Positions 25,205 to 39,254 of a stretch of DNA of 64,000 nucleotides are shown piece after piece. The translations under genes were made by a program, and so were the position numbers. The notes beneath the pieces were generated by a model. That model saw only the letters and a program-made list of their open reading frames with translations. It made no database searches and had not been told where the DNA came from. The stretch is from the IMG/VR virus record IMGVR_UViG_3300042367_000228, positions 308,017 to 372,016 of that record; one strand, 5' to 3'. Numbering within the stretch: the stretch's first letter is position 1; the number at the start of each line of letters is the position of its first letter.

Positions 25205-25378
25205 ATGGACCAAATACAACAATTTGAAGTAGACCAAATCACAGCAAGTCTTGCAGCTCAAGGCGTTACTAATTTCACAATGAAACGTGGTAACAACTGT
25301 GTTTGGGTCTCGTACAACTCAATCGATTGTTATTATATTTTCAAAGATGAAAAACTTGTTAACATACAAGTAGATTAA
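25205..25378 (+). CDS. small hypothetical protein
   Basis: 57 aa; promoter cassette with GGAGC RBS. Confidence 0.6.
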   Translation: MDQIQQFEVDQITASLAAQGVTNFTMKRGNNCVWVSYNSIDCYYIFKDEKLVNIQVD

Positions 25379-26160
25379 ATATGTTTGCAGTTATCAAAAT
25401 GATATCGTTTCATATTTGTAGATCCTTCTTTTCCGCAATGAGGACATATTATTTTTGGTTTATGTTGTTTAGCATAACTCATTTTTGCTTTTGTGTCAGC
25501 CGACATGTTTTGTTTAGAAAGGCGCATTTTTTCTATAGAAGATGCTGAATGAGTTTTGCCTTTGTGTGCGGCACTAATTTTAGCCTTGTGATCGTCTGAT
25601 TTAGGTCTTCCTTTTCCTGCTATACTTAGTTTAGCTTTAGTTTCAGCTGAAAGAGGTTTACCTTTATTAGGTGACGTCCTGCCTTTAGAAGCGACGCTTA
25701 GTTTAGCTTTAGTTTCATCTGAGACAGGTTTACGCGGTTTAGTTGAAACTCTGCCTTTTCCTGCTATACTTAGTTTAGCTTTGGTTTCAGCTGAAAGAGG
25801 AATACCTTTTTTGCGTGACGGCCGGCCTTTACTAGCCTGACTTATCTTTTTTCGGGTTTCAGCTGATGGAGATCGTTCTCTCATTGCAGCTGCATGATTT
25901 CGTTTAAGCCAACTATATAACTTATTATTACGATATTTTCCAGATGACATTCGATGGGCTGCAAATAGCAATTTATGATTATCTGGATAGATTTTTACAA
26001 GCAGTTGATGTGCTACATAATGAGCTTCAGGAGTTAGACGTACTAAGTTACTTGGTTCATTAGAACCGCCCATACATCGCGGAATAATGTGATGCTTTTC
26101 TGTGTAATCTGCAATCATATCTTTTGCAGTGAGTTGTTCGTATATTTTTTGGTAATTCAT
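25375..26160 (-). CDS. HNH homing endonuclease with NUMOD3 repeats
   Basis: EKHHIIPRCMGG...NLV.LT...H..AH; SAETKAKLS repeats; C-terminal CPHC..HF.NC. Confidence 0.9.
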   Translation of the reverse strand: MNYQKIYEQLTAKDMIADYTEKHHIIPRCMGGSNEPSNLVRLTPEAHYVAHQLLVKIYPDNHKLLFAAHRMSSGKYRNNKLYSWLKRNHAAAMRERSPSAETRKKISQASKGRPSRKKGIPLSAETKAKLSIAGKGRVSTKPRKPVSDETKAKLSVASKGRTSPNKGKPLSAETKAKLSIAGKGRPKSDDHKAKISAAHKGKTHSASSIEKMRLSKQNMSADTKAKMSYAKQHKPKIICPHCGKEGSTNMKRYHFDNCKHI

Positions 26161-26210
26161 TGTACTCCCCCAGATAAAAGAGAAGATTTGAATGTGTTAA
26201 ATAAATACAT
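26157..26210 (-). CDS. 17-aa leader peptide coupled to HNH gene
   Basis: MYLFNTFKSSLLSGGVQ*; AGGAG RBS; stop overlaps HNH ATG; conserved in second copy. Confidence 0.55.
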   Translation of the reverse strand: MYLFNTFKSSLLSGGVQ

Positions 26211-26280
26211 GGCTGGTACTCCTATATAGTATTAGAGCCGTTAGATCTGCCAGGATCGTGAACGGCATTTTTATTTATCA
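26211..26280 (-). ncRNA. conserved structured leader (hairpin + pseudoknot) of HNH cassette
   Basis: GCCGTT/AACGGC stem, GATC/GATC inner stem, loop CTGG complementary to CCAG next to RBS. Confidence 0.6.
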
Positions 26281-26371
26281 AAATTCCACTATGTGATTTA
26301 ATTACCATTTGCAATCCAGCTTACACTTTGTTATAATATATTTTTACTTACACAACAACGGAGTAGCAAAA

Positions 26372-26794
26372 ATGGCTTATGTATCAAAAGAAGATAAAGA
26401 CTCAAAAGCACCACGCTTAAGAGCATTAGCTAAACAGTATGGTTTGACTGCTACAGTAGCAGTTCGCCATCACAGCACCTTGCAGTTGAATGTATCAAAA
26501 GGCAAGATTGATTTTATCTCTAATCATGCAGATCGTGTAGCAGAACTTAATCATTGGTCAGCTGACAAAGAAAAAGACTATAATCAAAATAAAGATCGCA
26601 AGTATATGCAAGTGTCGCATCACTGGACTGATCACTTTGATGGCAACGCTAAAGAGTTTTTAGATAAAGCATTTGAGATCATGTTGGAAGGCTACTATAA
26701 TAACAGCGACGCAATGATTGATTATTTTGATACTGCGTTCTATGTTGACATCAATATTGGCAAATGGGATAAACCTTACACCGTTACAGCTTAA
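26372..26794 (+). CDS. conserved phage hypothetical protein
   Basis: IDYFDTAFYVDINIGKWDKPY C-terminal motif. Confidence 0.75.
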   Translation: MAYVSKEDKDSKAPRLRALAKQYGLTATVAVRHHSTLQLNVSKGKIDFISNHADRVAELNHWSADKEKDYNQNKDRKYMQVSHHWTDHFDGNAKEFLDKAFEIMLEGYYNNSDAMIDYFDTAFYVDINIGKWDKPYTVTA

Positions 26795-26808
26795 GAGGAG
26801 ATTAGACA

Positions 26809-27048
26809 ATGGCAATTACAGTAACAACAAATCAAACAGAGTCCATTGAAAAAATTAAGTATCCAATACTCGGAATTTTTCCAAATGGTACTATTGTTTT
26901 GTTTTCTTCTGAAACGTCTAGCACTATCTTGAAAGGAGAATCAAAAGACTATATAGGTCTTGATTGGAATCTCCAAAAAAACCGTTATATGCCCAATACC
27001 TGGGTGCCTTACCAAGGCACTGTAACATTATCTAATGAGACCTTATGA
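26809..27048 (+). CDS. hypothetical protein
   Basis: AGGAG RBS. Confidence 0.6.
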   Translation: MAITVTTNQTESIEKIKYPILGIFPNGTIVLFSSETSSTILKGESKDYIGLDWNLQKNRYMPNTWVPYQGTVTLSNETL

Positions 27049-27260
27049 ACGATTTTAATTTTGATTTAGACAAGATGAAAGCGGCTGTTGAGTCCGGACG
27101 CGCTTCAATTCCTAAAGAAGCCTTAGAGAGTTTTGAGGCATTTGATAAATGGTTAAATGAGGACAACGAACATGTTGTAAAAAAAGTTTGCGATCAAAAA
27201 GTAAATGGCGTTTGTCCATTACATAATCTATTTTGTCAATATCCTGAATGCGAGAACTAA
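27045..27260 (+). CDS. hypothetical protein
   Basis: coupled ORF; CPLHN..C.YP.C. Confidence 0.55.
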   Translation: MNDFNFDLDKMKAAVESGRASIPKEALESFEAFDKWLNEDNEHVVKKVCDQKVNGVCPLHNLFCQYPECEN

Positions 27261-27264
27261 CACG

Positions 27265-27480
27265 ATGTTAGAATTTAAATTAATCGGCTCTGTTCTTACT
27301 GTCATTGAACGACTTCATTCTTTTACCGAAACTCGTACTAGCTTTTGGTACTATAATATTGATACATGGTGTAAAAATCGTAACGGTAAAGAAAACGAAC
27401 CAATGGATTTTCAATGCGACCAAGGCACTATTGACTGGGTGAGAAAATACTACTTCCCAAAAGTTGGATTAACAAGTTAA
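27265..27480 (+). CDS. hypothetical protein
   Basis: ORF; start reassigned. Confidence 0.55.
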   Translation: MLEFKLIGSVLTVIERLHSFTETRTSFWYYNIDTWCKNRNGKENEPMDFQCDQGTIDWVRKYYFPKVGLTS

Positions 27481-27495
27481 CCTGAGGACCAAATA

Positions 27496-27720
27496 ATGAA
27501 CAAACAAATTAGAGATTTTGCAGAGCAAGCTGGTTACATGCCAAATGAACCAACTGCAGAGGCGTTTAACGAATTTAGCATTGAGAAATTCGCTAACTTG
27601 ATTATTAGTGAAGCATTGCGTATTTGCGATGAAGTATCAGAACCAGTTGATGAAGACGACCCTATGGTAAAAGGCGCGATTGTTTGTGCCGAAATGATTA
27701 GAGAAAACTTTGGTATATGA
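27496..27720 (+). CDS. hypothetical protein
   Basis: MN..I...A.QAG...EKFA.LII.E...C phage motif. Confidence 0.65.
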   Translation: MNKQIRDFAEQAGYMPNEPTAEAFNEFSIEKFANLIISEALRICDEVSEPVDEDDPMVKGAIVCAEMIRENFGI

Positions 27721-28094
27721 ACATCTCACGATTTAGCAAACAACGATTAAAAACATTATTTAAGACTGAGCATGTATCGGAAGAGTACTCGCTTCCATTG
27801 TTTAACTATCTGGTACATGGATTTAAACCTGGCAGTTTTTGGGAAAGTGTGTTAGCTAATGATTTTTTAGGCGCAATGATGTCTAGCCATCCAAGTAATC
27901 AAATTGTACATCTCAAGTATGCATCTATTTGGATATCTCATCGTATGCCACCTATAGCAGTTGGTAGTTACGAGAAAGTAGACAATTGGTTAAAGCTATC
28001 GGAAGATGAGCGCAGAACTATTTTAGAAGAGTGTGAGTTAATCTATACATCAAAAGAAGACACTTGGTTAGCACTTACTGAAGTTGAGCAATAA
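27717..28094 (+). CDS. hypothetical protein
   Basis: YL.HG..PGSF...VLAND motif. Confidence 0.7.
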   Translation: MNISRFSKQRLKTLFKTEHVSEEYSLPLFNYLVHGFKPGSFWESVLANDFLGAMMSSHPSNQIVHLKYASIWISHRMPPIAVGSYEKVDNWLKLSEDERRTILEECELIYTSKEDTWLALTEVEQ

Positions 28095-28160
28095 ATATCG
28101 TTACAATCCACTAGCAATTTGCTATAATATGTTTTTAGTTAAACAACTGCGGAGCACATT

Positions 28161-28349
28161 ATGTTATCAAAAGTTATTAGTAAAACTAACTGGGAATTGT
28201 TACGCAACCAAAAAGAATGGTTGTGGAATCAGGAATCCGACGAAGCAATAGGACTTGTTCATTTCTTAGATGCTATCCAAGACGCGGCAGTTGAAGATGG
28301 TATTGCTACTGAGTTAGAAGTGTTTGGAGAGTTAACAGATGATGATTGA
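28161..28349 (+). CDS. hypothetical protein
   Basis: promoter cassette. Confidence 0.65.
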   Translation: MLSKVISKTNWELLRNQKEWLWNQESDEAIGLVHFLDAIQDAAVEDGIATELEVFGELTDDD

Positions 28350-28668
28350 AATTGGCCCACAACTTTTTCAAATAATGCACGAACTGATTATATCAGTATC
28401 GGCATTACTAATTTTGTATGGTTTGTATCGCCTAACTGACAAAGTGTTAGAGCGAATAATGTGAGAGCAGATCGCTATTTAATGTATCGCCAAACAAGCA
28501 TTAAGTTCACTAATGCAGAAAAAGCACGATTGGCGCAACTTAAAAATAAAGATCGTAAGAATAATGGAATGTGGTATGCACCAGCTGGTACACGACGTAA
28601 TTAGTTCTTTACAAATCAACAGCATTTTGCTATAATATGTTTTTACTTACACAACAAAGGAGCACACA

Positions 28669-29067
28669 ATGTCTAAACAAGCACAACTTTCTGATCAACT
28701 TAAAGAGTTACAAGCAAGCGCCTGTAGTCTGTTTGAAGGTGTTGAACTTGCAAAAGGTAAGTTACCATTTGAAATTGCTCCTGAATGTACACAAAATTAT
28801 GGCTCTTGGTATAGTGCAAATGAACTTGCTAAGTTTGTAGGGAACGGTTGGAGATTACCAACCCGTAAAGAAGTACCACTAATAGGTGACTTTTTTGAGT
28901 TTGGAGTAAGATTTAATGAACCAATTTGGACATCGGAAACAATTGATGAAGATATATGGGACGACTTTGACATTTGGTCTGTTGATATTAAGACAGGTAA
29001 AGAAGAACAAAGTTTCATGTTTTCAGATTTTGGAATTGTGTTAGTTCGCGATCGATCAAACGACTAA
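28669..29067 (+). CDS. N-terminal extension + DUF1566/Lcl-like domain
   Basis: FEIAP...GWRLPTRKE...WTSE...LVRD. Confidence 0.75.
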   Translation: MSKQAQLSDQLKELQASACSLFEGVELAKGKLPFEIAPECTQNYGSWYSANELAKFVGNGWRLPTRKEVPLIGDFFEFGVRFNEPIWTSETIDEDIWDDFDIWSVDIKTGKEEQSFMFSDFGIVLVRDRSND

Positions 29068-29151
29068 TTAGAAGTTGATATACAAACTACTTGCAAACCA
29101 GCAAGTAGTTTGCTATAATATATTTTTACTTAAACAACAAAGGAGTACACA

Positions 29152-29370
29152 ATGTCTACTGTCACTGTTACTAATGAAAAGTTAATTGAAATGTTCAGCG
29201 AAGCTAAAATCCTAGTACAAGGTGATGATTCCTATGTAATTGATTTTGCAGATGCTGAAGAGATCCATGTACACCACGAAGACACTGGCGAGGAGTTTGT
29301 ATTGTCATATGACGACATTGACCTTGAACATGATCTTGTATATGGTTTGGTACTCCTAAATAAGAACTAA
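29152..29370 (+). CDS. hypothetical protein
   Basis: promoter cassette. Confidence 0.65.
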   Translation: MSTVTVTNEKLIEMFSEAKILVQGDDSYVIDFADAEEIHVHHEDTGEEFVLSYDDIDLEHDLVYGLVLLNKN

Positions 29371-29371
29371 A

Positions 29372-29632
29372 ATGATTAAGTACGCTAACAACTTGTCTGA
29401 AGATAGGTTTCAATCAGGTCCATTTAAACCTAAACACAAAATGTCAATTGATGAAGCAGTGATGTTTGTTACGTTTTATGAGGAAGACGGCATTAAAGGA
29501 TGGCGTTTTCCAACAGAACAAGAATCCATTGATAACCTAGAACTTACAGGTTGTTGGTATCAAGAAGATTTAAACACTAGCTGGCCACCTGATGAGTGTT
29601 ATTTTGTACGTCCAGTTAAGGACATTGATTAA
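29372..29632 (+). CDS. DUF1566/Lcl-like mini protein
   Basis: IDEA.M...DG.KGWRFPT.QE...PVKD. Confidence 0.8.
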   Translation: MIKYANNLSEDRFQSGPFKPKHKMSIDEAVMFVTFYEEDGIKGWRFPTEQESIDNLELTGCWYQEDLNTSWPPDECYFVRPVKDID

Positions 29633-29704
29633 CACAATTCTTTACAATTCACTAGCAGTTTGCTATAATATGTTTTTACTTACACAACAAATGGAGAGTA
29701 TAAT

Positions 29705-30208
29705 ATGAGCAACAACACTTACTGGAACAGCAATGGAAAACATCAAGCTGCCTATCAAGAACTATCTAAACTAGTTCCGTCAAGTGGTCCTGCAGGTACA
29801 GTTGAAGGCGAGATGTTAAGAGCTGCAACACGATTATATTATGACTATTACAATAACGGATTCTGTAACAACACCTCGGGTGCTGTGAACTATCTTACAC
29901 GTTGCGATGAACTATTTAACTTAGATATTGCTGAAGAGTTAGAGATTGTTGAACCTGAATGCAACACACCATACTACACTAATTTGCCGTTAGCAGGCCC
30001 ATTAGAAACGATTGCTGACGTAGTAATTGAGTATGTGATTAGCAAAGACGGCTTGTACACTGAAAGTGGTGACAACTTGTTTGACTATGCTGATCCAGAT
30101 GCAACTGATGACGATGATACATACGATTTTGACGACGATGACTACTCATGGGAAACAGATGACGTGCTTGCTGATCTTGAGTATGACGAATTAAAATTTG
30201 AAGATTAA
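29705..30208 (+). CDS. conserved phage hypothetical protein
   Basis: YWN.NG..Q..Y..L..LVP..G...T..GE.LRA..RLYYD.YNNG. Confidence 0.75.
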   Translation: MSNNTYWNSNGKHQAAYQELSKLVPSSGPAGTVEGEMLRAATRLYYDYYNNGFCNNTSGAVNYLTRCDELFNLDIAEELEIVEPECNTPYYTNLPLAGPLETIADVVIEYVISKDGLYTESGDNLFDYADPDATDDDDTYDFDDDDYSWETDDVLADLEYDELKFED

Positions 30209-30259
30209 TACACTCAACAGCGCGTAGCAATACGCGCTTTCTCTTTTTAGGAGTATCGC

Positions 30260-30478
30260 ATGAAATTAGATAGAATCGCAGTAATTGAAAACCATATTGC
30301 AACCTTAGACAACTTAGCAAGGAACGCTTCTGTAAAATTCAATAATGAAGAAAATTGGGCATTCATATATGGGTACACACAGTCTGACATTCGTCATATG
30401 CTTGAGTCACTTTCACTTACACAAAAACAATTAAAAACCCTTAACACACGATTAGAAGGATACGAAAAATATGTCTAA
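30260..30478 (+). CDS. hypothetical protein
   Basis: AGGAG RBS. Confidence 0.6.
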   Translation: MKLDRIAVIENHIATLDNLARNASVKFNNEENWAFIYGYTQSDIRHMLESLSLTQKQLKTLNTRLEGYEKYV

Positions 30479-30677
30479 CATCACACACGAACGAGCTATC
30501 GCTAAACACGCCGGCGTACTACCATCACAACTTCGTAAGCTATCAACAGGCAAGTATTTCGTTGATATAAATGTTCCACTTGAACCATTGTGCGATGCAC
30601 GTTATGATTTCACAGTTGAGTTTTCGCAAATACTAATTGGAACTATTGCTGATGTAGGCCCCGCTGTTAATGCGTAG
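30471..30677 (+). CDS. hypothetical protein
   Basis: coupled ORF. Confidence 0.5.
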   Translation: MSNITHERAIAKHAGVLPSQLRKLSTGKYFVDINVPLEPLCDARYDFTVEFSQILIGTIADVGPAVNA

Positions 30678-30811
30678 CATTGCAAGCAATGTTAAAAAGT
30701 TTAAGTTGAAATCCACTTAAAACTTGCGGACTATAGCGCGTTAAATGTTTTTTAATGCTACACTAAGCAAAAACAAAAACGCGCTATTTTAATAATATTT
30801 GGGAGGTTATT

Positions 30812-31207
30812 TTGGGATTAGATATGCATGTATTCGCTGTTTCATCAAATCAAGTACGCGAAGAAGATAAAGATAAAGAAGTAGATTTTGAACCATATTA
30901 CGAGGAAGGCCATACTGAAATTTGGTATTGGAGAAAACACCCAAATTTACACGGTTATTTTGAAAACATGTATCAACGTAAAGGTGGGACCGAGGAGTTT
31001 AATGGTGTTCCAGTAAAGCTCACTGAACGCGATCTAATGCGACTGGAAAAGGAGATTAAGGAACGTACACTTCCAAATACCTCTGGGTTCTTCTTTGGAG
31101 AAAGTAGCGACGATGATGATGCAGTAGAACAGGATTTACGATTTGTTGCTGAAGCAAGAATGCAACTATCACTTGGCAATATGGTATACTACAACTCATC
31201 GTGGTAA
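30812..31207 (+). CDS. conserved phage hypothetical protein
   Basis: TTG start, GGAGG RBS; GLD...YWRKHPNLHG...FN...L...DL. Confidence 0.75.
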   Translation: MGLDMHVFAVSSNQVREEDKDKEVDFEPYYEEGHTEIWYWRKHPNLHGYFENMYQRKGGTEEFNGVPVKLTERDLMRLEKEIKERTLPNTSGFFFGESSDDDDAVEQDLRFVAEARMQLSLGNMVYYNSSW

Positions 31208-31280
31208 TAAAACCATTTGCAATCCAATTAGCAACTTGCTATAATATGTTTTTACTTACAACAACTGCGGAGCAACAACA

Positions 31281-31616
31281 ATGGCAAACTATCTTTTAGT
31301 AGAAGTAGACACTAACGACGGCGACTATGTAACTGCATTTAATCCAATCAGTGACACCGCGTTAGAGAACGTTAAGTTACTAATTGAAAAGATTAAAGAA
31401 AATCCTAATCGTCATAACTTCCCATACGAGCATGATGATACTCAGGTTTACGATTTGTATGCAGATCTAAACGAATATGGATCAGTAGTTGATCAAGATA
31501 TTGCGATTGACACATTTATTGATTATGTACCATCTACTGAATATGGGTTTCATAAAGTAACACGAGTTGAACTGTATGATGTAGGACATGTTGACGGATT
31601 GTTATACAAGAAATGA
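31281..31616 (+). CDS. hypothetical protein
   Basis: promoter cassette; DTNDGDYVT. Confidence 0.65.
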   Translation: MANYLLVEVDTNDGDYVTAFNPISDTALENVKLLIEKIKENPNRHNFPYEHDDTQVYDLYADLNEYGSVVDQDIAIDTFIDYVPSTEYGFHKVTRVELYDVGHVDGLLYKK

Positions 31617-31840
31617 TTGAACTTGGCTATGAATCCAACAGAATGATGTCATATGATGAAGCAGTCATGTACTGCTTCTTCTATTCTCAAGATGGCAAGA
31701 AGGGATGGCGTATGCCAACAGGGGATGAGTACGATGAATATTATGAACTTACCAGCAGCTGGTATCAAGATGACACCTTAAAAGACGATCCTGATGAAAC
31801 ATGGCTAGTAATCCCAGTGAGAGATATAAATGACAATTGA
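31613..31840 (+). CDS. DUF1566/Lcl-like mini protein
   Basis: YDEAVMYC..GKKGWRMPT. Confidence 0.85.
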   Translation: MIELGYESNRMMSYDEAVMYCFFYSQDGKKGWRMPTGDEYDEYYELTSSWYQDDTLKDDPDETWLVIPVRDINDN

Positions 31841-32051
31841 AATCGGACCTCGTGTATCTACTCCTATCCATTATGATGAAGCACTGCTTTATTGTATGAC
31901 TTTATCTTACAACGGATACTACGATTGGCGTTTGCCAGTTGCCAGCGAAGCAATTTTTGAATTTGCAATATGGGTTGATGAGAATGGTATATTATTTGCA
32001 AAATCGCATCCATATGCAAAGTATCCTGCTATTCCGGTACGAGATATATAA
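31830..32051 (+). CDS. DUF1566/Lcl-like mini protein
   Basis: YDEALLYC..YYDWRLP. Confidence 0.85.
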   Translation: MTIEIGPRVSTPIHYDEALLYCMTLSYNGYYDWRLPVASEAIFEFAIWVDENGILFAKSHPYAKYPAIPVRDI

Positions 32052-32117: not shown

Positions 32118-32555
32118 ATGCCAAACTATGTAAGCAACAGAGCTATTATTAGACACTCTGATCCAGCTAAACTTGCACTACTTGACACTGCATATCAAGA
32201 ACGCAACTTGTTCAATACTATCCTACCATGTCCTGAAGGATTACTTAACACACCATCCGGTCGTTATGCTGATCCAGTAAAGCAAGCTGATATGGAAAAA
32301 CGCCAAGATGAAAATTATAAGCAATTTGGTTACAGCACAGATTATCAATGGCGTGTAGAAAATTGGGGTACAAAATGGGAAGCTATTACACATGAACAAG
32401 GTCCATTGTACAAAGACAGTGACGGCGAGATTGTATTAGAGTTTGAAACTGCATGGGCTCCACCTACTGGCATTTACAAAGCATTACGCGAACAAGGATA
32501 CACAGTAGATTACGATTGGAGTGAGGAATGGGAAACGTTAATTGATGAGGACTAA
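32118..32555 (+). CDS. DUF1281/YubB ferredoxin-like domain protein
   Basis: MPN...N; WR.ENWGTKW; FETAWAPP. Confidence 0.75.
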   Translation: MPNYVSNRAIIRHSDPAKLALLDTAYQERNLFNTILPCPEGLLNTPSGRYADPVKQADMEKRQDENYKQFGYSTDYQWRVENWGTKWEAITHEQGPLYKDSDGEIVLEFETAWAPPTGIYKALREQGYTVDYDWSEEWETLIDED

Positions 32556-32613
32556 TATGAAACATTTAGTATTTGTAATGATCAGTTTACTACAATCCCT
32601 GTGAGATCTATTA

Positions 32614-32826
32614 ATGGCAATTGAGATTGGTAAACAATTTCCAAATCTAGTAACGATTGATGAAGCCGTTATGATTGCCTTTATGACCCCAGGATGGCGG
32701 CTTCCTACAGAACAAGAGTACATTGACCATTACGAGAGCTTAAAGTTTTGTTGGGATCAATCAGATGTAGAACAGTCAAATCCAAACATAAGAAACGGCT
32801 ATCTTAAATTAGTGAGAGATTGCTAA
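32614..32826 (+). CDS. DUF1566/Lcl-like mini protein
   Basis: IDEA.M..GWRLPT.QE...LVRD. Confidence 0.8.
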   Translation: MAIEIGKQFPNLVTIDEAVMIAFMTPGWRLPTEQEYIDHYESLKFCWDQSDVEQSNPNIRNGYLKLVRDC

Positions 32827-32853
32827 GGCCCCGCTGTACGCGTAGGAGGAATT

Positions 32854-33102
32854 ATGATCGAAGTTAATGCGCCATGTACTATTCAACTTGGTATTCCGAG
32901 TGAAAACCCAATGACATATGACGAAGCCGTTTTGTACTGTTTCTTTTATAATCAAGAGGGAAGTACAGGATGGCGAATGCCGACAGATATTGAGTGGCAA
33001 CGCTATGCTCCAGATATTAGTCCGTGGGCGTTAGGTGATAACGACGACTATTTACATATGATAGATACCTTTTATGTTGCACTTCCAGTACGTGATATAT
33101 AA
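32854..33102 (+). CDS. DUF1566/Lcl-like mini protein
   Basis: YDEAVLYC..GWRMPT..E...PVRD. Confidence 0.85.
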   Translation: MIEVNAPCTIQLGIPSENPMTYDEAVLYCFFYNQEGSTGWRMPTDIEWQRYAPDISPWALGDNDDYLHMIDTFYVALPVRDI

Positions 33103-33168
33103 ACTTCTTTACACACCCCGCTGTAAATGCTATAATATGTTTTTACTTAATAAAGTTTGGAGCGCACA

Positions 33169-33393
33169 ATGTCTTTAACTTACAGTTTCAATAACCGTGG
33201 CGAAGTATTAGAACATTTCAGTGACGGTATAACACTAAATTTTAGCTACTGGGAATGTAGTTGCCCTGGCGAATTAACTAACTGGATACATCACGTTGCT
33301 ATACAAGAATGTCCAAGATGTAACGAGTTGAAAGAAGAGCGTCCAAATGCTTACGCAGAAGAAGTTGAGATGATGTTAGAGGAGATAGCATGA
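33169..33393 (+). CDS. Zn-finger-like hypothetical protein
   Basis: YWECSC...C..C; similar to 18314. Confidence 0.6.
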   Translation: MSLTYSFNNRGEVLEHFSDGITLNFSYWECSCPGELTNWIHHVAIQECPRCNELKEERPNAYAEEVEMMLEEIA

Positions 33394-33593
33394 AAGTTTT
33401 TCCAGTTTACTACAATGATGGTTCCGGCGAAGGTGATCGTAGCTGTGGAATATTTGATTCATCTGAAGCTGCTAAGTTGTTTATCAAACAGCAACAATAC
33501 AGTTGGATGTATGATTGGTATTCAGAGGGTGTGCTAACATTAGCTGACTTACCTCCAGATGAAGATGAAGACGACAACGAAGAGGACGAATAG
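33390..33593 (+). CDS. hypothetical protein
   Basis: coupled ORF, acidic tail. Confidence 0.6.
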   Translation: MKVFPVYYNDGSGEGDRSCGIFDSSEAAKLFIKQQQYSWMYDWYSEGVLTLADLPPDEDEDDNEEDE

Positions 33594-33594
33594 T

Positions 33595-33828
33595 ATGCCG
33601 CTTAATATTCACAAAGAACACTTTCAAGGCTTGGTTAACAAGAATAAAGAACTTAGACAACTATTGCAAGCCGCAGCCAAAGCTAAGATAAATGGTGATT
33701 GGTGTATTATTGAAGCAGTACCACTTGATGAAGAAATGGTCTATTGCTTCAATGAAGAAACCTATGCTCAGTACACAATTCCATTTAGAGATATTGACTT
33801 TGATAATCTCAAAACAATTTTGAAATAA
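33595..33828 (+). CDS. hypothetical protein
   Basis: ORF; start reassigned. Confidence 0.55.
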   Translation: MPLNIHKEHFQGLVNKNKELRQLLQAAAKAKINGDWCIIEAVPLDEEMVYCFNEETYAQYTIPFRDIDFDNLKTILK

Positions 33829-33903
33829 GATTTAAAAATCACTTGCAATCCAGCAAGCACTTTACTATAATATGTTTTTAGTTACTACAACGCGGAGCGC
33901 ACT

Positions 33904-34059
33904 ATGCCAAAACTATACAAAGTTTCATTCTTAATTCAAACTGATGAGGATCCTGTAAACTGGATTTGTGAAGCAATTGATGATCAACTTGAAGATGGTG
34001 AAAAACTATTAAAGTACATGAGTTTTGAAACTACACTTGACGAAGAAATTGAGCCATAG
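33904..34059 (+). CDS. small hypothetical protein
   Basis: 51 aa; promoter cassette with GGAGCG RBS. Confidence 0.6.
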   Translation: MPKLYKVSFLIQTDEDPVNWICEAIDDQLEDGEKLLKYMSFETTLDEEIEP

Positions 34060-34068
34060 GAGACTGCT

Positions 34069-34263
34069 ATGAACAGATTTAAAAGATACCATCGTTATTT
34101 TTGTAGAGCTATTGTGGCAGTGGTATTTTTGTTTCTTATGGCATTTGTTATATGGGGAATTTTTGAATATCAGGATGTGCGTTTAGCGTTTGGTCTGATA
34201 ACAGGTTTACTTGTGACTATAGTAATTGTTTGCCATATATGGATAACCGCTTTTATGGAATAG
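34069..34263 (+). CDS. two-helix membrane protein
   Basis: two hydrophobic segments; AGGAG RBS. Confidence 0.6.
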   Translation: MNRFKRYHRYFCRAIVAVVFLFLMAFVIWGIFEYQDVRLAFGLITGLLVTIVIVCHIWITAFME

Positions 34264-34271
34264 GAGATAAC

Positions 34272-34451
34272 ATGAAACTTCAAAATGTAATTGGTTTGTT
34301 AGATAACACAATCACCGGAAAGGAACACTTGCAGGAGATGTTAGAAAATTCCGATGACCCGGGGCATCAGTTTGCAAGAGAATTCCTTAAAATCAACCTT
34401 ACAGAGTTGAATAACATTAAGGACCACTTGCTACAGGTTACAGAGATTTAA
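34272..34451 (+). CDS. hypothetical protein
   Basis: AGGAG RBS; L..NI.EL..I..DL. Confidence 0.6.
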   Translation: MKLQNVIGLLDNTITGKEHLQEMLENSDDPGHQFAREFLKINLTELNNIKDHLLQVTEI

Positions 34452-34458
34452 ATACCAC

Positions 34459-34938
34459 TTGCATACCAGCGCATAGTTTGTTATACTATGCGCTTACTAA
34501 CAAGCAATGCGGAGCGCACTATGCCATATAATACTGTTACTAATCATTTACTTCGTTTAGCTGACTACGTTGAAGCTAAGTTAGTTACTGAATATGAAAG
34601 ACCCAACGGCACAACTACTTACTTCCCAGCTACTGGTTTTGTAATGATAGTTAAAACAGGCAATTACTATGGAATGGATATAGGACGTGTACAAAGCGTT
34701 GACATAGACGTAGACGGTACTGCATCTTGTATCACTATTGATGGCTACTTTCGTAGCTTAGAGGACGATCCGGTTGATGAAGACACATGGGGACTTCATA
34801 TTAAAATGATCACAGCTTCTGAATGGCACAAGGAAGAACGTAGAGAGTTAGTACACGGTTAACAAACCATTTGCATACCAGCGCATAGTTTGTTATACTA
34901 TGCGCTTACTAACAAGCAATGCGGAGCGCACTATGCCA
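34459..34938 (+). repeat. 68-bp identical promoter-leader repeat
   Basis: 34459-34526 = 34871-34938; 57 bp also at 35658-35714. Confidence 0.9.
34521..34862 (+). CDS. hypothetical protein
   Basis: promoter cassette; start after GGAGCG. Confidence 0.65.
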   Translation: MPYNTVTNHLLRLADYVEAKLVTEYERPNGTTTYFPATGFVMIVKTGNYYGMDIGRVQSVDIDVDGTASCITIDGYFRSLEDDPVDEDTWGLHIKMITASEWHKEERRELVHG

Positions 34939-35223
34939 AAGTCAAGAAAAACAGTAAACGTAGAGGAATTAAGACTCTATGCAAATGAAATGCTCAAAGC
35001 AGATCATGGCAACGCACCATGGCGCAATGGCATCATTTTAATGATTGAACGTGTATTACATGACTCAGGTAATTACAGAGGATTCAATTACTTGTTTAGT
35101 GTTGATTGCCCAGACGGTGTACGTCCAGGAATACGCAATATACCAGGCACAACGCATGGTGTTCCGGATGATTACGAAGAACGTTTTAAAGATACAGATT
35201 GCACGAGACGGTTCTATTACTAA
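34933..35223 (+). CDS. hypothetical protein
   Basis: promoter cassette; E.VLH..GNY.GF.YL. Confidence 0.7.
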   Translation: MPKSRKTVNVEELRLYANEMLKADHGNAPWRNGIILMIERVLHDSGNYRGFNYLFSVDCPDGVRPGIRNIPGTTHGVPDDYEERFKDTDCTRRFYY

Positions 35224-35296
35224 TTAAAAACCATTTGCAATTCCAAACTTAGTTTGCTATAATATGTTTTTACTTACACAACACGCGGAGCGCACA

Positions 35297-35650
35297 ATGT
35301 CTACTACTTATAACTTCCCTGAATTTGATCTTAGCGATGGCGATTACTTTGATCCAGAGGATCGTGCAGTCTGGGATGAAATCAACAAGTCAATTGTATA
35401 TGACTTTGAAACTGTTGAAGAAGACATGGCAGTTTACGGCTATGAAGACGTAACAGAAGAAGAGATAGACGCCTTTACAGCCGGTGCAGAGTATGCTTTT
35501 AGCAAGATGAATGAAGCATTAAAAATTGCAGGTATCAACGCTCAAGTATGTTATCTAGACTTAGTTGATGGTACTGGTTACATCTTAACCCGAGTAGACG
35601 AAAGTCCAGAAGACTTTGTGAACAGAGTACTTGGAAACGTTACGGTTTAA
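35297..35650 (+). CDS. acidic hypothetical protein
   Basis: promoter cassette. Confidence 0.65.
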   Translation: MSTTYNFPEFDLSDGDYFDPEDRAVWDEINKSIVYDFETVEEDMAVYGYEDVTEEEIDAFTAGAEYAFSKMNEALKIAGINAQVCYLDLVDGTGYILTRVDESPEDFVNRVLGNVTV

Positions 35651-35719
35651 ATATCATTTGCATACCAGCGCATAGTTTGTTATACTATGCGCTTACTAAC
35701 AAGCAATGCGGAGCACAAA

Positions 35720-36019
35720 ATGTCAAAAGTTATTATTAAACTTGCCCCAACTAAACTACTCGCAGAACTCTACTTTGCGGAAAATAAAGTTAAGTATGCC
35801 AAAGCCTGGTTGCCATTATACACTCAACACTACCCAATCACATTGACTGAAGCTGGCATTGAAGCAGCTGAAGAGGCGTTTGACTTAACTAACAATCCAA
35901 GTCGCGAAGAAGATCGTAATAGATTTTATGGAAGACATCGTTCAGTGTCAGTGGGCGATGTAGTAGAAGTTGATGGTACTGATTACTTATGTGACTCATT
36001 TGGTTGGGTTGCGATGTAA
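35720..36019 (+). CDS. hypothetical protein (YodL-like C-terminus)
   Basis: RSVSVGDVV.VDG..Y.C.S.GW. Confidence 0.65.
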   Translation: MSKVIIKLAPTKLLAELYFAENKVKYAKAWLPLYTQHYPITLTEAGIEAAEEAFDLTNNPSREEDRNRFYGRHRSVSVGDVVEVDGTDYLCDSFGWVAM

Positions 36020-36088
36020 TTACTACTTGCAACACCAAAATAAGTTTGCTATAATATGTTTTTACTTACACAAACTGCGGAGCACGTT

Positions 36089-36427
36089 ATGATAAATGAA
36101 CTTACAGCAAGAGTAGCAGTACAACTTGGACTCGAAGCTCAAGACAGACTTACAAAGACTCTTACAGAGTCTGTAATCAATCAAATCGACACTATAATTA
36201 GAGCCACAGCTGAAACGGGCGACACATATGGTCAGGTTGATGTTGTTCACAACATTGGCAAATGGAATCGCTCTAGAAGTAAGGATGCAGTTTATATAGA
36301 CGCACCAAGTATGTGTGTATTAGATAATGTTGTAGAAAATATCAATCGTCATTATGACGAACTTGAGTTTCAAACAGAATTTGAATTGGTTAACGACCAC
36401 CCAGTAACATCTATCTGTTGGGAATAG
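36089..36427 (+). CDS. hypothetical protein, tandem paralog A
   Basis: high similarity to 36511-36849, each with its own promoter. Confidence 0.7.
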   Translation: MINELTARVAVQLGLEAQDRLTKTLTESVINQIDTIIRATAETGDTYGQVDVVHNIGKWNRSRSKDAVYIDAPSMCVLDNVVENINRHYDELEFQTEFELVNDHPVTSICWE

Positions 36428-36510
36428 TTATGTTGGTTTAAACAGTTCTTTACAAGTCAGTTTTAATTTGCTATAATATGTTTTTACTTACACAAACTGT
36501 GGAGCGTAAT

Positions 36511-36849
36511 ATGTTAAATGAACTTACTGCAATACAAGCAATTGAACTCGGCCGCGAGGTTCAAGCTATTATGATAGAGAAACTAACAGAGTCTGTGATT
36601 GCTCGTATAAACGGAGTAATTAAACTAAAAGCTGAAAACGGTCACACATCCGGTGAAGTTGATGTTGTTCACCATGTTGGTGTATGGCGGCACACTAAAG
36701 GTAAAGACACAGTGTACTGCGAAGCACAGACACAAGAAATATTAGACTATGTTATAGAAAACATCGATCGTCATTATGAAGAACTTGGGTTTGACACAGA
36801 GTTTGAATTTGTTAGCGATGACCCTGTAACAACTATTTGTTGGGGGTAG
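36511..36849 (+). CDS. hypothetical protein, tandem paralog B
   Basis: high similarity to 36089-36427. Confidence 0.7.
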   Translation: MLNELTAIQAIELGREVQAIMIEKLTESVIARINGVIKLKAENGHTSGEVDVVHHVGVWRHTKGKDTVYCEAQTQEILDYVIENIDRHYEELGFDTEFEFVSDDPVTTICWG

Positions 36850-36945
36850 CTGATGTAAATAGTTCTTTACAAGTCAGTTTTAATTTGTTATAATATGTTT
36901 TTTTAAATTGCTTTACTTTTTTAATTTTATTTAGGAGTGTACAAA

Positions 36946-37455
36946 ATGACTACAACTATTGAATCTACAGTTCCTGCTACTACAACTGCGGAAAAAACAT
37001 TTACTGTCGCAGGGGTATCTTGCTTAAAAGGTGAGTACAAAGTTAGACACGCTAACAATTTAGATCGTGTGAAAGTGCTACAAGCAAACGAACACACTGA
37101 CATACGTTTAATTGAGTTGCCTAACGCAATGACTAAAATGGAAGCAGTACAATACTTAATTAGCTTACCAACTAATGATGAAATTGAAGACGAATCATTA
37201 AAAACCTTCTTTGAGGACATTGATGCACAACGAGCGTTTGATGACTTCTTATCAGCTAAAGCTCCTAAGCCACCAAAACCAGCTAAAGCTCCTAAAGAGC
37301 CCAAAGTTAAAAAAGCAGTAGCTGAGGTAGTTGAGGATCTTGTAGAGACTCCAGTTGACTTAACTGACTTGTATGAGTCAGTAGGGCTTGTTCCTCCGAC
37401 TGTATATGAAGATGCAGTTGCTGAAGAATTTGATACAGAAGATCAACCTTTCTAA
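36946..37455 (+). CDS. hypothetical protein, paralog of 56352-56759
   Basis: EKTFTVAGVS...HTDIRLIELPNAMTK.EA. Confidence 0.75.
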   Translation: MTTTIESTVPATTTAEKTFTVAGVSCLKGEYKVRHANNLDRVKVLQANEHTDIRLIELPNAMTKMEAVQYLISLPTNDEIEDESLKTFFEDIDAQRAFDDFLSAKAPKPPKPAKAPKEPKVKKAVAEVVEDLVETPVDLTDLYESVGLVPPTVYEDAVAEEFDTEDQPF

Positions 37456-37466
37456 AAAGTAGTACA

Positions 37467-37549
37467 AATGCCGTAAGGGTGCAGTGCAGGTGATACCTGA
37501 TTGAATTGAACTGCATCTTTTAAACTACTCTAATCAAGTAGGCGGCATT
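37467..37549 (+). ncRNA. candidate structured RNA at start of tRNA cluster
   Basis: 8-bp closing stem plus three internal stems; strand uncertain. Confidence 0.35.
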
Positions 37550-37595
37550 AGTTTTAAAACTAAATAGATTACAAGATTGTAACAGAATATTTAAT

Positions 37596-37667
37596 CCGTT
37601 CTTAGCATAAAGGTAATGCCAGGTCCTCATAAGACCCACTATCTCAGTTCGACCCTGAGGGAACGGA
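37596..37667 (+). tRNA. tRNA-CAT (Met or Ile2)
   Basis: cloverleaf: CCGTTCT/GGAACGG, loop CT-CAT-AA, CTCAG-TTCGACC-CTGAG; no encoded CCA. Confidence 0.85.
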
Positions 37668-37707
37668 TTAAATGTTTTGTAATAATACAGTTAACAACCA
37701 TTTTTAT

Positions 37708-37857
37708 ACTTGAGTAACTCAGTTGGCCAGAGTTGGGGCTATTTGCATGCCCCCAGTAACAGTTGTGCCGTTAACACTATAATCGCGATATAGTTAGGAA
37801 CAATCAAACTGCCCTGCATGCCCGGGGAGACGCGCGGTTCGAATCCCGCCTCAAGTA
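37708..37857 (+). ncRNA. tRNA-like RNA with ~71-nt insertion in anticodon arm
   Basis: ACTTGAG/CTCAAGT acceptor, canonical D arm, GGTTCGAATCC T loop; TGCATGCCC direct repeat at 37744 and 37815. Confidence 0.6.
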
Positions 37858-37867
37858 CCTTCTTTAT

Positions 37868-37942
37868 GGAACTATAGTATAACAGTAGTATGCAGGTCTG
37901 CAAAACCTTGCGGTGCCGATGCAAATTTGGCTAGTTCCTCCA
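37868..37942 (+). tRNA. tRNA-Cys(GCA)
   Basis: GGAACTA/TAGTTCC, CT-GCA-AA loop, U discriminator, CCA; atypical TGCAAAT T loop. Confidence 0.85.
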
Positions 37943-37955
37943 AAATTTAAGCATA

Positions 37956-38675
37956 TTAGGGTTTGCGTTTACAGTTATCAAAATGGTATCGTTTCATATT
38001 TCCACCTCTTCCTATTTTATTACAGTAAGGGCAGGTTAATTCAATTTTTTGTTTTCCCTTCATTGCGGCACTTATGTTAGCTTTATGATTAGCTGATTTA
38101 AGTATACCAGTTTTAGCAGAACTTATGTTAGATTTATGATTATCTGAAAGTTGTTTACCATTATGCGCAGACCGCATCTTAGATTTAGTTTCCTCTGAAT
38201 GTCTTTTTCCTGTATTAGTAACACTTAATTTAGCTCGTGTTTTGGATGAAACAACTCTTCCTGTATTTGTAGAACTTAGCTTAGTCCGCATACTATCTGG
38301 CATACTTTTACCTTTGTTAGGCGACGGCCTTCCTGTAAGAGATGCACTTATTTTAGCCTTATGTTCATCTGATATAGTTTTTCCTTTATTAGCAATACTG
38401 GCTGCTATAGAAAACTTTCGTCTAAGCCATCCATACAATTTATTTGTAATTCTACAATTACCCATCATATTAGCCGCATACACTAATTTATGATTATGTG
38501 GGTAGATTTTTACAAGTAGCTGATGTGCTACATAATGAGCCTCGGGAGTTAATAATACTAAGTTACTTGGATTGTTAGAACCGCCCATACAACGAGGAAT
38601 TATGTGATGCTTTTCTGTATAGTCTGCAATCATATCTTTTGCAGTTAATTGTTCATATATCTTTTGATAGTTCAT
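37956..38675 (-). CDS. HNH homing endonuclease with NUMOD3 repeats
   Basis: N-terminal ~60 aa nearly identical to 25375-26160; S.E.K.K.S repeats; CPYC..HFDNC. Confidence 0.9.
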   Translation of the reverse strand: MNYQKIYEQLTAKDMIADYTEKHHIIPRCMGGSNNPSNLVLLTPEAHYVAHQLLVKIYPHNHKLVYAANMMGNCRITNKLYGWLRRKFSIAASIANKGKTISDEHKAKISASLTGRPSPNKGKSMPDSMRTKLSSTNTGRVVSSKTRAKLSVTNTGKRHSEETKSKMRSAHNGKQLSDNHKSNISSAKTGILKSANHKANISAAMKGKQKIELTCPYCNKIGRGGNMKRYHFDNCKRKP

Positions 38676-38725
38676 TGTACTTCTCCATTTATAAAAGAAG
38701 AGGTGAAAGTGTTGAATAAATACAT
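38672..38725 (-). CDS. 17-aa leader peptide coupled to HNH gene
   Basis: MYLFNTFTSSFINGEVQ*; same length and overlap as 26157-26210. Confidence 0.55.
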   Translation of the reverse strand: MYLFNTFTSSFINGEVQ

Positions 38726-38795
38726 TGCTGGTACTCCTATATAGTATTAGAGCCGTTAGATATTCCAGTATCGTGAACGGCTTTTTTATTTATCA
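38726..38795 (-). ncRNA. conserved structured leader of HNH cassette, copy 2
   Basis: GATA/TATC compensates GATC/GATC of copy 1; CTGG loop conserved. Confidence 0.6.
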
Positions 38796-39244: not shown

Positions 39245-39254
39245 CGGAGACACT

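Follow-up and report, generated by a model that had tools for sequence, protein, structure and literature searches.

A portable leader of phage homing-endonuclease genes with two opposed late-promoter motifs and a predicted two-hairpin antisense RNA

The analysed window (64,000 nucleotides, positions 308,017 to 372,016 of the IMG/VR record IMGVR_UViG_3300042367_000228) contains two HNH-NUMOD3 genes on the - strand, each of which sits alone among + strand genes. Both hit the Pfam families HNH and NUMOD3, and both are preceded by a shared leader that is 93% identical and is composed of the motif GATAAATA, a 5-nt spacer, a 30-nt hairpin, AGGAG, TACCAGC(C/A) and ATG. This ATG opens a 17-codon uORF whose stop overlaps the HNH start. 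The features of the two copies (A and B), including those that are predictions from sequence alone, and their immediate context are as follows.

25375-26160, - strand: HNH-NUMOD3 (Mob-like) homing endonuclease gene, copy A (Pfam NUMOD3 at 1.5e-21 plus HNH; about 40% identical to T4-like phage homing endonucleases)
26157-26210, - strand: 17-codon uORF A, starting at the conserved ATG of the cassette, its stop overlapping the HNH ATG (ATGA)
26165-26185, - strand: predicted 7-bp hairpin inside uORF A, its 3' arm containing the HNH Shine-Dalgarno sequence (GGAG)
26200-26207, + strand: putative backward late promoter AATAAATA, the complement of TATTTATT in uORF codons 2-4
26219-26223, - strand: Shine-Dalgarno sequence AGGAG of the cassette ATG, its complement lying in and next to the loop of antisense helix H1
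26237-26266, either strand: hairpin H2, i.e. 6 bp, a bulge, 1 bp, a bulge, 4 bp and a variable 6-nt loop; the 5'-terminal hairpin of the mRNA and the 3' terminator-like hairpin of the predicted antisense RNA
26272-26279, - strand: forward late-promoter motif GATAAATA, predicted start G at 26266, the first base of H2
26212-26279, + strand: predicted ~68-nt antisense RNA A, i.e. G, helix H1 (26213-26235) with the anti-Shine-Dalgarno sequence in its loop, H2 and a U-rich tail
26309-26337, + strand: sigma-70-type early promoter (TTGCAA-17-TATAAT) of the next + strand gene, directly after the cassette and not part of it
37956-38675, - strand: HNH-NUMOD3 homing endonuclease gene, copy B
38672-38725, - strand: 17-codon uORF B with ATGA overlap
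38680-38700, - strand: predicted hairpin inside uORF B that sequesters the HNH Shine-Dalgarno sequence
38715-38722, + strand: putative backward late promoter AATAAATA, copy B
38752-38781, either strand: hairpin H2, copy B
38787-38794, - strand: forward late-promoter motif GATAAATA, copy B, predicted start G at 38781
38727-38794, + strand: predicted antisense RNA B
38869-38898, + strand: canonical intrinsic terminator about 75 nt beyond antisense RNA B, followed by an early promoter at 38968-38996 (both context)

All sequence features described in the initial sequence-only reading are present at the stated places. The hairpin pattern occurs twice in the window against 0.00 expected from shuffles, and its inner pair is C-G in one copy and A-U in the other. 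The leader is the best conserved part of the duplicated unit, with 64/69 identical positions, compared to 44/54 for the uORF, 190/240 for the start of the HNH gene and only 12/40 just upstream of the promoter, i.e. the unit begins sharply at the promoter. The two uORFs differ at 3 synonymous and 5 non-synonymous codons, so the peptide is not well conserved.

The interpretation given in that reading, a riboswitch-like or autoregulatory element that includes a loop/spacer pseudoknot, restrains a toxic nuclease by translational coupling and travels with it, is only partly supported. The hairpin is a selected structure: on 105 distinct sequences 8 of 10 pairs change on both sides and 100% of cells are paired, which was reached in 0/500 shuffles. 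The leader also travels with selfish nuclease genes. The proposed pairing of CTGG in the loop with CCAG before the ATG, however, is not supported. Both motifs are identical in copies A and B and thus carry no covariation information within the window, whereas in the wider family the loops vary freely while the spacer YCAGC(A)ATG stays constant. Complementarity of 4 nt or more occurs in 16/101 modules against 12.6 +/- 2.8 when loops are permuted, and the third uORF-bearing copy (L041) has loop TGGGGA and spacer ACAG. Autoregulation by the encoded protein is unlikely as the same leader serves unrelated nuclease families.

The leader is not specific to the two HNH genes. More than 200 distinct copies precede HNH, GIY-YIG and other homing-endonuclease ORFs in lake and some marine phage contigs. 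The module was found in 39 viral contigs in one search, in more than 120 viral contigs in another and in more than 120 metagenome contigs in a third, the latter two numbers being lower bounds. The 372-kb phage studied here has four strong copies plus a weaker fifth, and other large contigs carry up to 9 copies each. Of 77 downstream ORFs, most hit PHROG homing-endonuclease families (phrog_314 36, phrog_655 24), and Pfam gives NUMOD3 23, the HNH families HNH_3 6, HNH 5 and HNH_5 2, and GIY-YIG 4. In most family members the ATG at the position of the uORF start begins the endonuclease ORF itself.

Several lines of evidence assign the selected structure to the strand opposite the mRNA. Sense-strand stems show A.C but never G.U, and the single middle pair of H2 is G-C in 70, A.C in 24, A-U in 17 and G.U in 0 cases on the sense strand, so that it is a legal pair only on the antisense strand, where it reads GC 62, GU 22 and AU 17. 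On this strand a second helix, H1, appears with 522 Watson-Crick and 159 G.U pairs (about 20% G.U), and these G.U pairs would be A.C mismatches in the mRNA. The model of the two-hairpin fold (R2) collected 115 distinct sequences, in which 99.3% of cells are paired, 15 of 19 pairs change on both sides and 342 cells have double changes, with 0/500 shuffles reaching any of these measures. It should be kept in mind that the alignments used for pair counts were fitted to the model and that family members were gathered with patterns that fixed parts of H2. The antisense fold is more stable than the sense fold in 95/100 modules (-17.2 against -13.6 kcal/mol, p = 7e-17) and has two hairpins in 94/100. 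Antisense RNA A scores 82.6 bits with R2 and folds at -19.9 kcal/mol (z = -3.1), antisense RNA B scores 82.1 bits and folds at -18.2 kcal/mol (z = -3.3).

These findings make an element acting in the mRNA, be it a 5'-terminal stabiliser or the riboswitch-like pseudoknot, an unlikely alternative. The predicted mRNA start is indeed the first base of the hairpin, 5'-terminal stem-loops are established stabilisers against RNase E, and CTGG/CCAG complementarity exists in copies A and B. Nevertheless, loop and spacer do not covary, wobble pairs occur only on the other strand, the sense leader folds no better than shuffles (z about -1), an Rfam search returned nothing even at E = 10, and a generic stabiliser needs neither the conserved bulges nor H1.

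The forward motif GATAAATA matches the intergenic motif NATAAATA of this phage, which precedes many of its genes by 22-30 nt, and the genome encodes a gp55-like late sigma factor. In an unbiased, independent set of modules in which only H2 was required, TAAATA is present in 105/108, with a 5-nt spacer in 88. A TATTTA motif just after the start codon reads as the same T4-type late promoter pointing backwards, with the same 5-nt spacing to a G. CAGC-N-TATTTA is present in 103/111 modules, with a 5-nt spacer in 76, and this holds whether the ATG lies inside that spacer (87) or upstream of CAGC (11); in the independent set it is present in 102/108, with a 5-nt spacer in 80. The motif sits in all three reading frames and is frozen at synonymous sites: in M-x-I-Y ORFs the third base of codon 2 is T in 56/56 (background 33%), Ile is ATT in 54/56 (background 39%) and Tyr is TAT in 53/56. 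Only 7/485 genes of this genome have TATTTA in that position.

An alternative reading of these motifs is a DNA-level element, i.e. the inverted TAAATA/TATTTA pair and the palindromic hairpin might serve as a protein-binding or recombination site that lets nuclease ORFs be swapped, or as a homing target. Unrelated ORFs share the cassette, and the uORF stub and relocated start codons clearly indicate ORF replacement. We regard this reading as very unlikely, as the G.U-type asymmetry and the 15 covarying pairs across two helices point to RNA, and as the inverted motifs equal the phage's own promoter motif with start-site spacing.

The backward promoter may instead drive late expression of the flanking phage gene, with H1 and H2 as 5' leader of that transcript, just as T4 endonuclease genes such as seg and mob carry promoters for downstream essential genes (PMC2988022). 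In about 70% of cases the next gene in the antisense direction is co-oriented with the antisense transcript. However, a hairpin followed by a U-rich tract directly after the start would oppose read-through, the predicted RNA is exactly co-extensive with the nuclease 5' UTR with the anti-Shine-Dalgarno sequence at the H1 loop, and the flanking genes are unrelated from locus to locus and have their own early promoters in the window. An outward promoter thus appears improbable.

A somewhat less unlikely, though still doubtful, possibility is that the cassette is mere punctuation, i.e. a forward late promoter and, on the other strand, hairpins that only terminate or stabilise the 3' end of neighbour-direction transcripts having run antisense through the inverted nuclease gene, without a separate small RNA or a backward promoter. 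Most cassettes are inverted, with the upstream neighbour on the opposite strand in 72 cases against 30 and both neighbours in 31 against 15. The antisense-strand structure is followed by a U-rich tract (on average 7.3 U in 12 nt), and early promoters restart + strand transcription right after both window copies. However, copy B already has a proper terminator 75 nt further on. Moreover, punctuation explains neither the frozen TATTTA in three reading frames at a fixed 5-nt distance from the base of H1 nor why H1 begins exactly one base after the predicted start, and the structure is just as intact in the 15 cassettes that are co-oriented with both neighbours.

Taken together, we consider it somewhat more likely than not that the leader is a ~95-bp portable expression-control cassette for free-standing homing-endonuclease genes in a lineage of large T4-related phages. 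In this model two late promoters of the phage's own type (TAAATA, 5 nt, then a G start) face each other about 70 bp apart. The forward promoter would start the nuclease mRNA exactly at the base of H2, whereas the backward promoter, written into codons 2-4 of the ORF, would start a ~68-nt RNA that is the exact complement of the whole 5' UTR, folds into H1 and the bulged H2 with its hypervariable loop, and ends in a U-rich tract that overlaps the forward promoter. Pairing of this RNA with the mRNA leader would block the Shine-Dalgarno sequence and the AUG and would probably expose the duplex to RNase III, and transcription running into the forward promoter may also interfere with it; either way the nuclease would be kept low. 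The conserved antisense-strand structure, the two promoter-like motifs with their geometry, the nucleotide-level freezing of codons 2-4 and the link with nucleases are shown by our analysis, whereas the firing of the backward promoter, the end of the RNA, repression by it and the translational coupling are inferred. The model lacks any support from transcripts: the only RNA run contained just scraps, and contig ends in metagenomes gave no start-site signal. The U-tract at the predicted end of the RNA is imperfect: an A follows the stem in about 95% of modules and the first 8 nt contain a mean of 4.6 U. A simple terminator scan did not flag the hairpin, and the separate canonical terminator beyond copy B shows that + strand read-through transcripts do reach this region. 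Both promoters are of the same class, which leaves the sense-to-antisense ratio unexplained.

In the two window copies a Mob-like HNH ORF would have replaced the original ORF, and the uORF looks like the 17-codon stub of this earlier ORF. In all three known uORF variants (A, B and L041) a 7-bp hairpin inside the uORF is predicted to bury the HNH Shine-Dalgarno sequence, with only pair-compatible changes between them, i.e. the changes preserve an RNA hairpin rather than amino acids. Although it rests on three sequence variants only, translational coupling of the uORF to the HNH gene is plausible. HNH synthesis would then depend on uORF translation and so inherit the antisense control.

Related arrangements are found in several systems. 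Cyanophage S-PM2, a T4-like phage, has an experimentally detected antisense RNA, CfrI, that overlaps a free-standing homing-endonuclease gene (Millard et al. 2010, cited in PMC5931967 and PMC10690425). CfrI is about 225 nt long. It is a 3' antisense RNA of the psbA region (PMC5931967), linking psbA to the endonuclease gene according to the title of Millard et al. 2010, and is neither a conserved ~68-nt two-hairpin RNA over the 5' UTR nor a multi-copy portable cassette. In T-even phages, homing endonucleases (I-TevI, I-TevII, I-TevIII, segB, Aeh1 mobE) are controlled by a late promoter plus an RBS-sequestering hairpin, and an unexplained hairpin lies upstream of seg43 in Aeromonas phage 25 (PMC2988022). 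Here, too, a late promoter lies immediately upstream of a selfish nuclease gene and leader RNA structure would serve the same aim of limiting nuclease synthesis; as in seg43(25) the hairpin lies upstream of the RBS without covering it. In contrast, the module hairpin does not contain the RBS, its selection is on the opposite strand and a second, backward promoter motif is present, and a search with model R1 found no copy in T4 or in Aeromonas phage 25.

In the type I toxin-antitoxin loci hok/mok/sok and symE/SymR a cis-antisense RNA overlaps the ribosome-binding site of a harmful protein's mRNA. In hok/mok/sok control passes through an overlapping leader ORF to which toxin translation is coupled, resembling the uORF and the hidden HNH Shine-Dalgarno sequence of the window copies, and the SymR promoter also lies at the very start of the target ORF. 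Our analysis gave no evidence of post-segregational killing or addiction, the cargo proteins are site-specific nucleases of several families, and the uORF relay is seen in only three sequence variants. Finally, in IS10/Tn10 the face-to-face promoters pOUT and pIN produce RNA-OUT and RNA-IN: a selfish element's DNA-cutting enzyme gene has an opposing promoter just inside its 5' end, which makes a short, stable stem-loop RNA complementary to the mRNA 5' end and ribosome-binding site, the antisense stem being interrupted by bulges. In the cassette, for which the corresponding RNA is so far only predicted, the enzyme is a homing endonuclease instead of a transposase, the setting is a lytic giant phage, both promoters are of the T4 late type, the overlap covers the entire 5' UTR (~68 nt) and the RNA has two hairpins.

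The window forms the last 64 kb of a 372,016-bp virus record that has direct terminal repeats and a G+C content of 35.6%, and the DNA sequencing runs in which it was found are lake-water metagenomes. The + strand of this part carries dense arrays of small ORFs behind strong σ70-type promoters of the form TTTACA or TTGCAA, 17 nt, TATAAT, whereas the two HNH genes are the only sizeable - strand genes in their neighborhoods. Further features of the window are:
Window 14589-14733 (+), a full-length Rfam match to Polynucleobacter-1 RNA (RF01718), 59.6 bits against a gathering score of 37, lying inside a giant phage genome.
Window 25143-40482 (+), e.g. 28608-28636, 29641-29669, 32057-32085, 36449-36477 and 38968-38996, more than twenty near-consensus σ70 promoters, often with a TG extension, that precede small ORFs and look like an early-gene array with one promoter per one or two genes.
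Window 34505-34521 and 34917-34933 (-), an identical 17-nt hairpin with an identical tail, occurring twice about 410 nt apart inside a run of similar-sized ORFs (34488-36849), which suggests a local tandem duplication of small genes.
Window 37595-37668, 37868-37939 and 39840-39916 (+), tRNA-Met, a second tRNA seen only by Rfam, and tRNA-Arg(CCT), respectively. The second HNH gene (copy B) ends 17 nt from the second tRNA, i.e. it sits in a tRNA cluster, as T4 segB does.

Inspection of the two loci showed that everything listed in the sequence-only reading is present. Both genes hit Pfam HNH and NUMOD3 and resemble the Mob-type homing endonucleases of T4-like phages; relatives were found in 1157 phage records, the best being about 40% identical and annotated as homing endonuclease, so that the products are free-standing, predicted HNH-NUMOD3 homing endonucleases. 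Similarity between the two copies starts abruptly at the promoter-like GATAAATA and fades at the stop codon. The leader is 64/69 identical, the uORF 44/54 and the first 240 nt of the HNH gene 190/240, whereas the 40 nt upstream are 12/40 identical, which is random. The uORFs differ at 3 synonymous and 5 non-synonymous codons, so equal length and the ATGA overlap are conserved, but the peptide is not.

The leader is not private to these genes. The same genome holds further copies in front of other genes, namely a different HNH-like ORF at genome 289.7 kb, a zinc-finger/nuclease-like ORF at 243.1 kb and a GIY-YIG/NUMOD3 ORF at 250.1 kb. Two pattern scans of the viral collection returned 39 loci and more than 120 loci (a lower bound), a scan of metagenome contigs returned more than 120 further loci (likewise a lower bound), a few of them marine, and individual large contigs carry up to 9 copies. 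Of 77 complete downstream ORFs most match PHROG homing-endonuclease families, and Pfam sees NUMOD3, HNH, HNH_3 and GIY-YIG. Several ORFs behind intact leaders are broken by early stops, the usual decay of selfish nucleases: at four loci (L174, L176, L144, L153) the first ORF after an intact cassette is a nuclease ORF cut short at 35-53 codons, and at another (L182) a cassette remnant is fused to the last codons of a nuclease.

ORF and leader are separable modules, as shown by a third paralogue of the window's HNH gene at genome about 239863-240084 (locus L005, - strand), whose similarity begins at the ATG and which has neither cassette nor uORF. Cassette copy C (locus L003, genome 288190-291245; ORFs at 918-1160 and 2342-2983 of this locus, - strand) is inverted between what, as judged by eye only, are a glutaredoxin-like ORF and an ORF that reads like the C-terminal part of a ribonucleotide reductase small subunit; the nrd region is a classic homing site. 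A PhoH-like gene at genome 182308-182376 (locus L046, +), also inverted among its neighbors, has a look-alike leader (TAAATA, hairpin, TCTAAC, Shine-Dalgarno sequence), but both covariance models, R1 and R2, score it poorly. In two of the lake DNA runs (X1 and X10) assembled contigs break or fork at the cassette (window 26217-26283), one continuing into a copy-D-type hairpin. The repeat confuses assemblers, and cassette-flanked joins in such contigs deserve caution.

No described relative of the element was found in the collections searched. Rfam gave nothing at the element, neither at gathering scores over the whole window nor at E = 10 on the leader. Blastn of the leader and of a consensus-like copy against 50,697 cultured-phage records yielded no real match, and covariance model R1 found no hit in the genomes of T4 and Aeromonas phage 25, i.e. 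the element is neither the T-even hairpin nor the hairpin upstream of seg43 of phage 25. A scan of the genome collection gave 5 hits, all in MAG contigs, which offer no clue to the host.

The hairpin (H2) itself is real. On 105 distinct sequences it is 100% paired, and 8 of 10 pairs change on both sides, whereas its loop is the most variable stretch. The pseudoknot proposed in the sequence-only reading, between CTGG in this loop and CCAG in the spacer before the ATG, is not supported. The spacer is nearly constant, YCAGC(A)ATG, and loop-spacer complementarity of 4 nt or more is found in 16 of 101 modules, against 12.6 +/- 2.8 after permuting loops, which is not significant. Moreover, the third uORF-bearing copy (L041) has neither CTGG nor CCAG. 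CTGG/CCAG in the window is therefore shared by descent and is not a selected pairing.

Three independent signals suggest that selection acts on the strand opposite the mRNA. First, the base between the two conserved bulges of H2 pairs with the single base on the other side as G-C 70, A.C 24, A-U 17 and G.U 0 on the sense strand, which on the antisense strand reads as C-G, U.G and U-A, with no C.A. Second, the few imperfect stem pairs are all A.C on the sense strand and never G.U. Third, a second helix (H1) forms only on the antisense strand, joining the complement of the conserved CAGC spacer to the complement of the conserved TCTAAC that follows the hairpin; H1 is 8-9 contiguous pairs in 65 of 98 sequences, with 522 Watson-Crick and 159 G.U pairs. 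A covariance model of the full antisense RNA (R2) collected 115 distinct sequences, in which 99.3% of cells are paired, 15 of 19 pairs change on both sides, and no shuffle of 500 reaches any measure, although these alignments were fitted to the model and the collection patterns fixed parts of H2. The antisense strand folds better than the sense strand in 95 of 100 modules, at -17.2 against -13.6 kcal/mol, and gives two hairpins in 94. For the window copies the z-scores are -3.1 and -3.3 antisense, against about -1 sense.

In this genome NATAAATA lies 22-30 nt before many start codons and is enriched on the sense side of upstream intergenic regions, ATAAATA occurring in 47 sense against 24 antisense regions. 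The genome also encodes a gp55-like late σ (E = 3.7e-7). T4 late promoters are a lone -10-like element (PMC7892883). The octamer is placed at -13 to -6. Thus, by sequence criteria, the motif fits a gp55-type late promoter with predicted start sites. The forward TAAATA of the cassette sits 5 nt before the first G of the hairpin in most copies. Just after the start codon sits TATTTA(T), the reverse complement of the same motif, which occurs 0, 1 or 2 nt after the ATG, and so in all three reading frames (M-Y-L, M-L/I-F, M-x-I-Y), and when it is closer to the ATG, extra bases appear between CAGC and the ATG. TATTTA lies 4-6 nt from the base of H1 in 100 of 111 modules, all 103 that have the motif lying at 4-7 nt. 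The distance from CAGC to TATTTA is 5 nt in 76 of these 103 and stays so in the 11 modules whose start codon has moved upstream of CAGC. In an independent set gathered with a pattern that constrained H2 only, forward TAAATA is present in 105 of 108 modules (5-nt spacer in 88) and backward CAGC-N-TATTTA in 102 of 108 (5-nt spacer in 80; 4-6 nt from the base of H1 in 98). Both putative promoters therefore have the same geometry, and each predicted RNA starts at or one base before a hairpin.

The backward motif is also frozen at synonymous sites. In M-x-I-Y ORFs the third base of codon 2 is T in 56 of 56, Ile is ATT in 54 and Tyr is TAT in 53, as compared to background values of 33%, 39% and 73% in the same ORFs, and only 7 of 485 genes of this genome have TATTTA in that place. 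A protein-level explanation of TATTTAT as the GIY motif was rejected on the basis of these codon statistics and of its presence in three frames and in HNH ORFs. Long-range pairing of ATAAATA with TATTTAT in read-through mRNA, in the style of T4 lysozyme or I-TevI, was rejected by reasoning rather than by computation, as it would be a 7-bp all-A/U helix closing an about 85-nt loop, and most cassettes have no upstream sense transcription.

Based on these findings we propose that the backward promoter would give an RNA of about 68 nt, predicted at:
Window 26212-26279 (+), antisense RNA of the first window copy.
Window 38727-38794 (+), antisense RNA of the second window copy.
This RNA would consist of a G; helix H1, with the complement of the Shine-Dalgarno sequence in and beside its 7-nt loop; one A; helix H2, with two bulged G and a variable 6-nt loop; and a tail that averages 7.3 U in 12 nt. 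An A follows the H2 stem, the first 8 nt of the tail hold a mean of only 4.6 U, and a consensus terminator scan did not flag the hairpin. The predicted RNA is the exact complement of the mRNA from its first base to the AUG. The hypervariable loop and covarying stems may keep the several cassettes in one genome from cross-talking, and convergent transcription ending on the forward promoter could add interference, both of which are inferences. Searches for transcripts returned only DNA runs and fragments of one metatranscriptome, and no metagenome contig starts at the predicted start site.

In most family members the ATG at the position of the uORF starts the nuclease itself. In the window copies and in L041 a Mob-like HNH ORF follows a 17-codon stub that still carries the putative backward promoter, and the stub looks like what was left when one ORF displaced another. 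Within it, a predicted 7-bp hairpin pairs a pyrimidine run with the purine run that holds the HNH GGAG. The differences among the three variants, the only distinct ones found in the viral collection, are all pair-compatible (U-A against U.G, C-G against U.G), and they explain the non-synonymous changes. Together with the ATGA overlap this would be the classical set-up for translational coupling. As the antisense RNA would cover only the initiation region of the uORF, coupling is what would pass the control on to HNH. This part of the sequence-only inference thus survives, albeit on the thin evidence of three variants.

The upstream neighbor is on the opposite strand in 72 of 102 cassettes, and both neighbors are in 31 against 15. 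A plainer reading, which we considered first because the + strand reads as a hairpin plus a T-run, is that the antisense hairpins only end the transcripts of the neighbors. However, TAAATA is conserved far beyond what a U-tract needs, and this reading leaves the frozen backward promoter motif and its spacing unexplained. It also sits badly with the equally intact cassettes that are co-oriented with their neighbors and with the separate canonical terminator after copy B. Alternatively, the backward motif may be an outward promoter for the flanking gene, which is possible, but opposed by the hairpin and U-rich tract directly after the predicted start.

Taken together, the original observation is confirmed, whereas its interpretation is only partly supported. 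The hairpin is selected, the cassette is mobile with its nuclease, the nuclease is probably restrained, and coupling is plausible, but a sense-strand pseudoknot or riboswitch is not supported, and the element is most likely a conserved cis-antisense small RNA made from a promoter hidden in the first codons. The sequences themselves establish the structure conserved on the antisense strand, the two opposed promoter-like motifs with their spacing and the frozen synonymous sites; that the backward promoter fires, where the RNA ends, that it represses its target and that the nucleases cleave DNA is inferred. With moderate confidence we suggest a previously undescribed and very widespread family of structured antisense RNAs of about 68 nt, each born from a late promoter written into codons 2-4 of a homing-endonuclease gene and forming, together with the forward promoter, a portable face-to-face cassette that has been exchanged among HNH, GIY-YIG and other nuclease ORFs in giant aquatic phages. 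In this view the H2 loop and the covarying stems would give each of the several cassettes in one genome its own private sense-antisense pair.

If confirmed, this would add a large phage sRNA family that is absent from Rfam and would show that a promoter can be encoded inside the first codons of a gene strongly enough to freeze synonymous sites and to shape the N-terminus of the protein (M-x-I-Y). It would also explain why these nuclease genes so often sit inverted and give annotators a precise marker for nuclease cassettes and their decayed remnants. Additionally, it would provide a small natural bidirectional late-promoter and antisense module for phage engineering.

How phages tolerate the many selfish nucleases in their genomes is known only from a few T4 cases, in which hairpins sit over the ribosome-binding site. 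The cassette has a predicted forward late promoter, as found in T-even control of homing endonucleases, but its leader hairpin does not include the Shine-Dalgarno sequence, which in the T-even cases makes longer transcripts untranslatable: H2 ends 13 nt upstream of the AGGAG in the window copies and leaves it unpaired in the sense fold. The finding points to a second, general solution, i.e. a compact antisense-RNA cassette shared by unrelated nuclease families across hundreds of uncultured phages. The regulatory principle itself is known, whereas the RNA family and its setting would be new. The predicted arrangement is the architecture of RNA-OUT/RNA-IN of IS10 and of type I toxin-antitoxin pairs such as those with Sok and SymR, and bulged stems and a recognition loop are typical of such RNAs. 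In the window copies the uORF would be a relay, created when one ORF displaced another, that passes antisense control on to the downstream ORF, as in hok/mok/sok.
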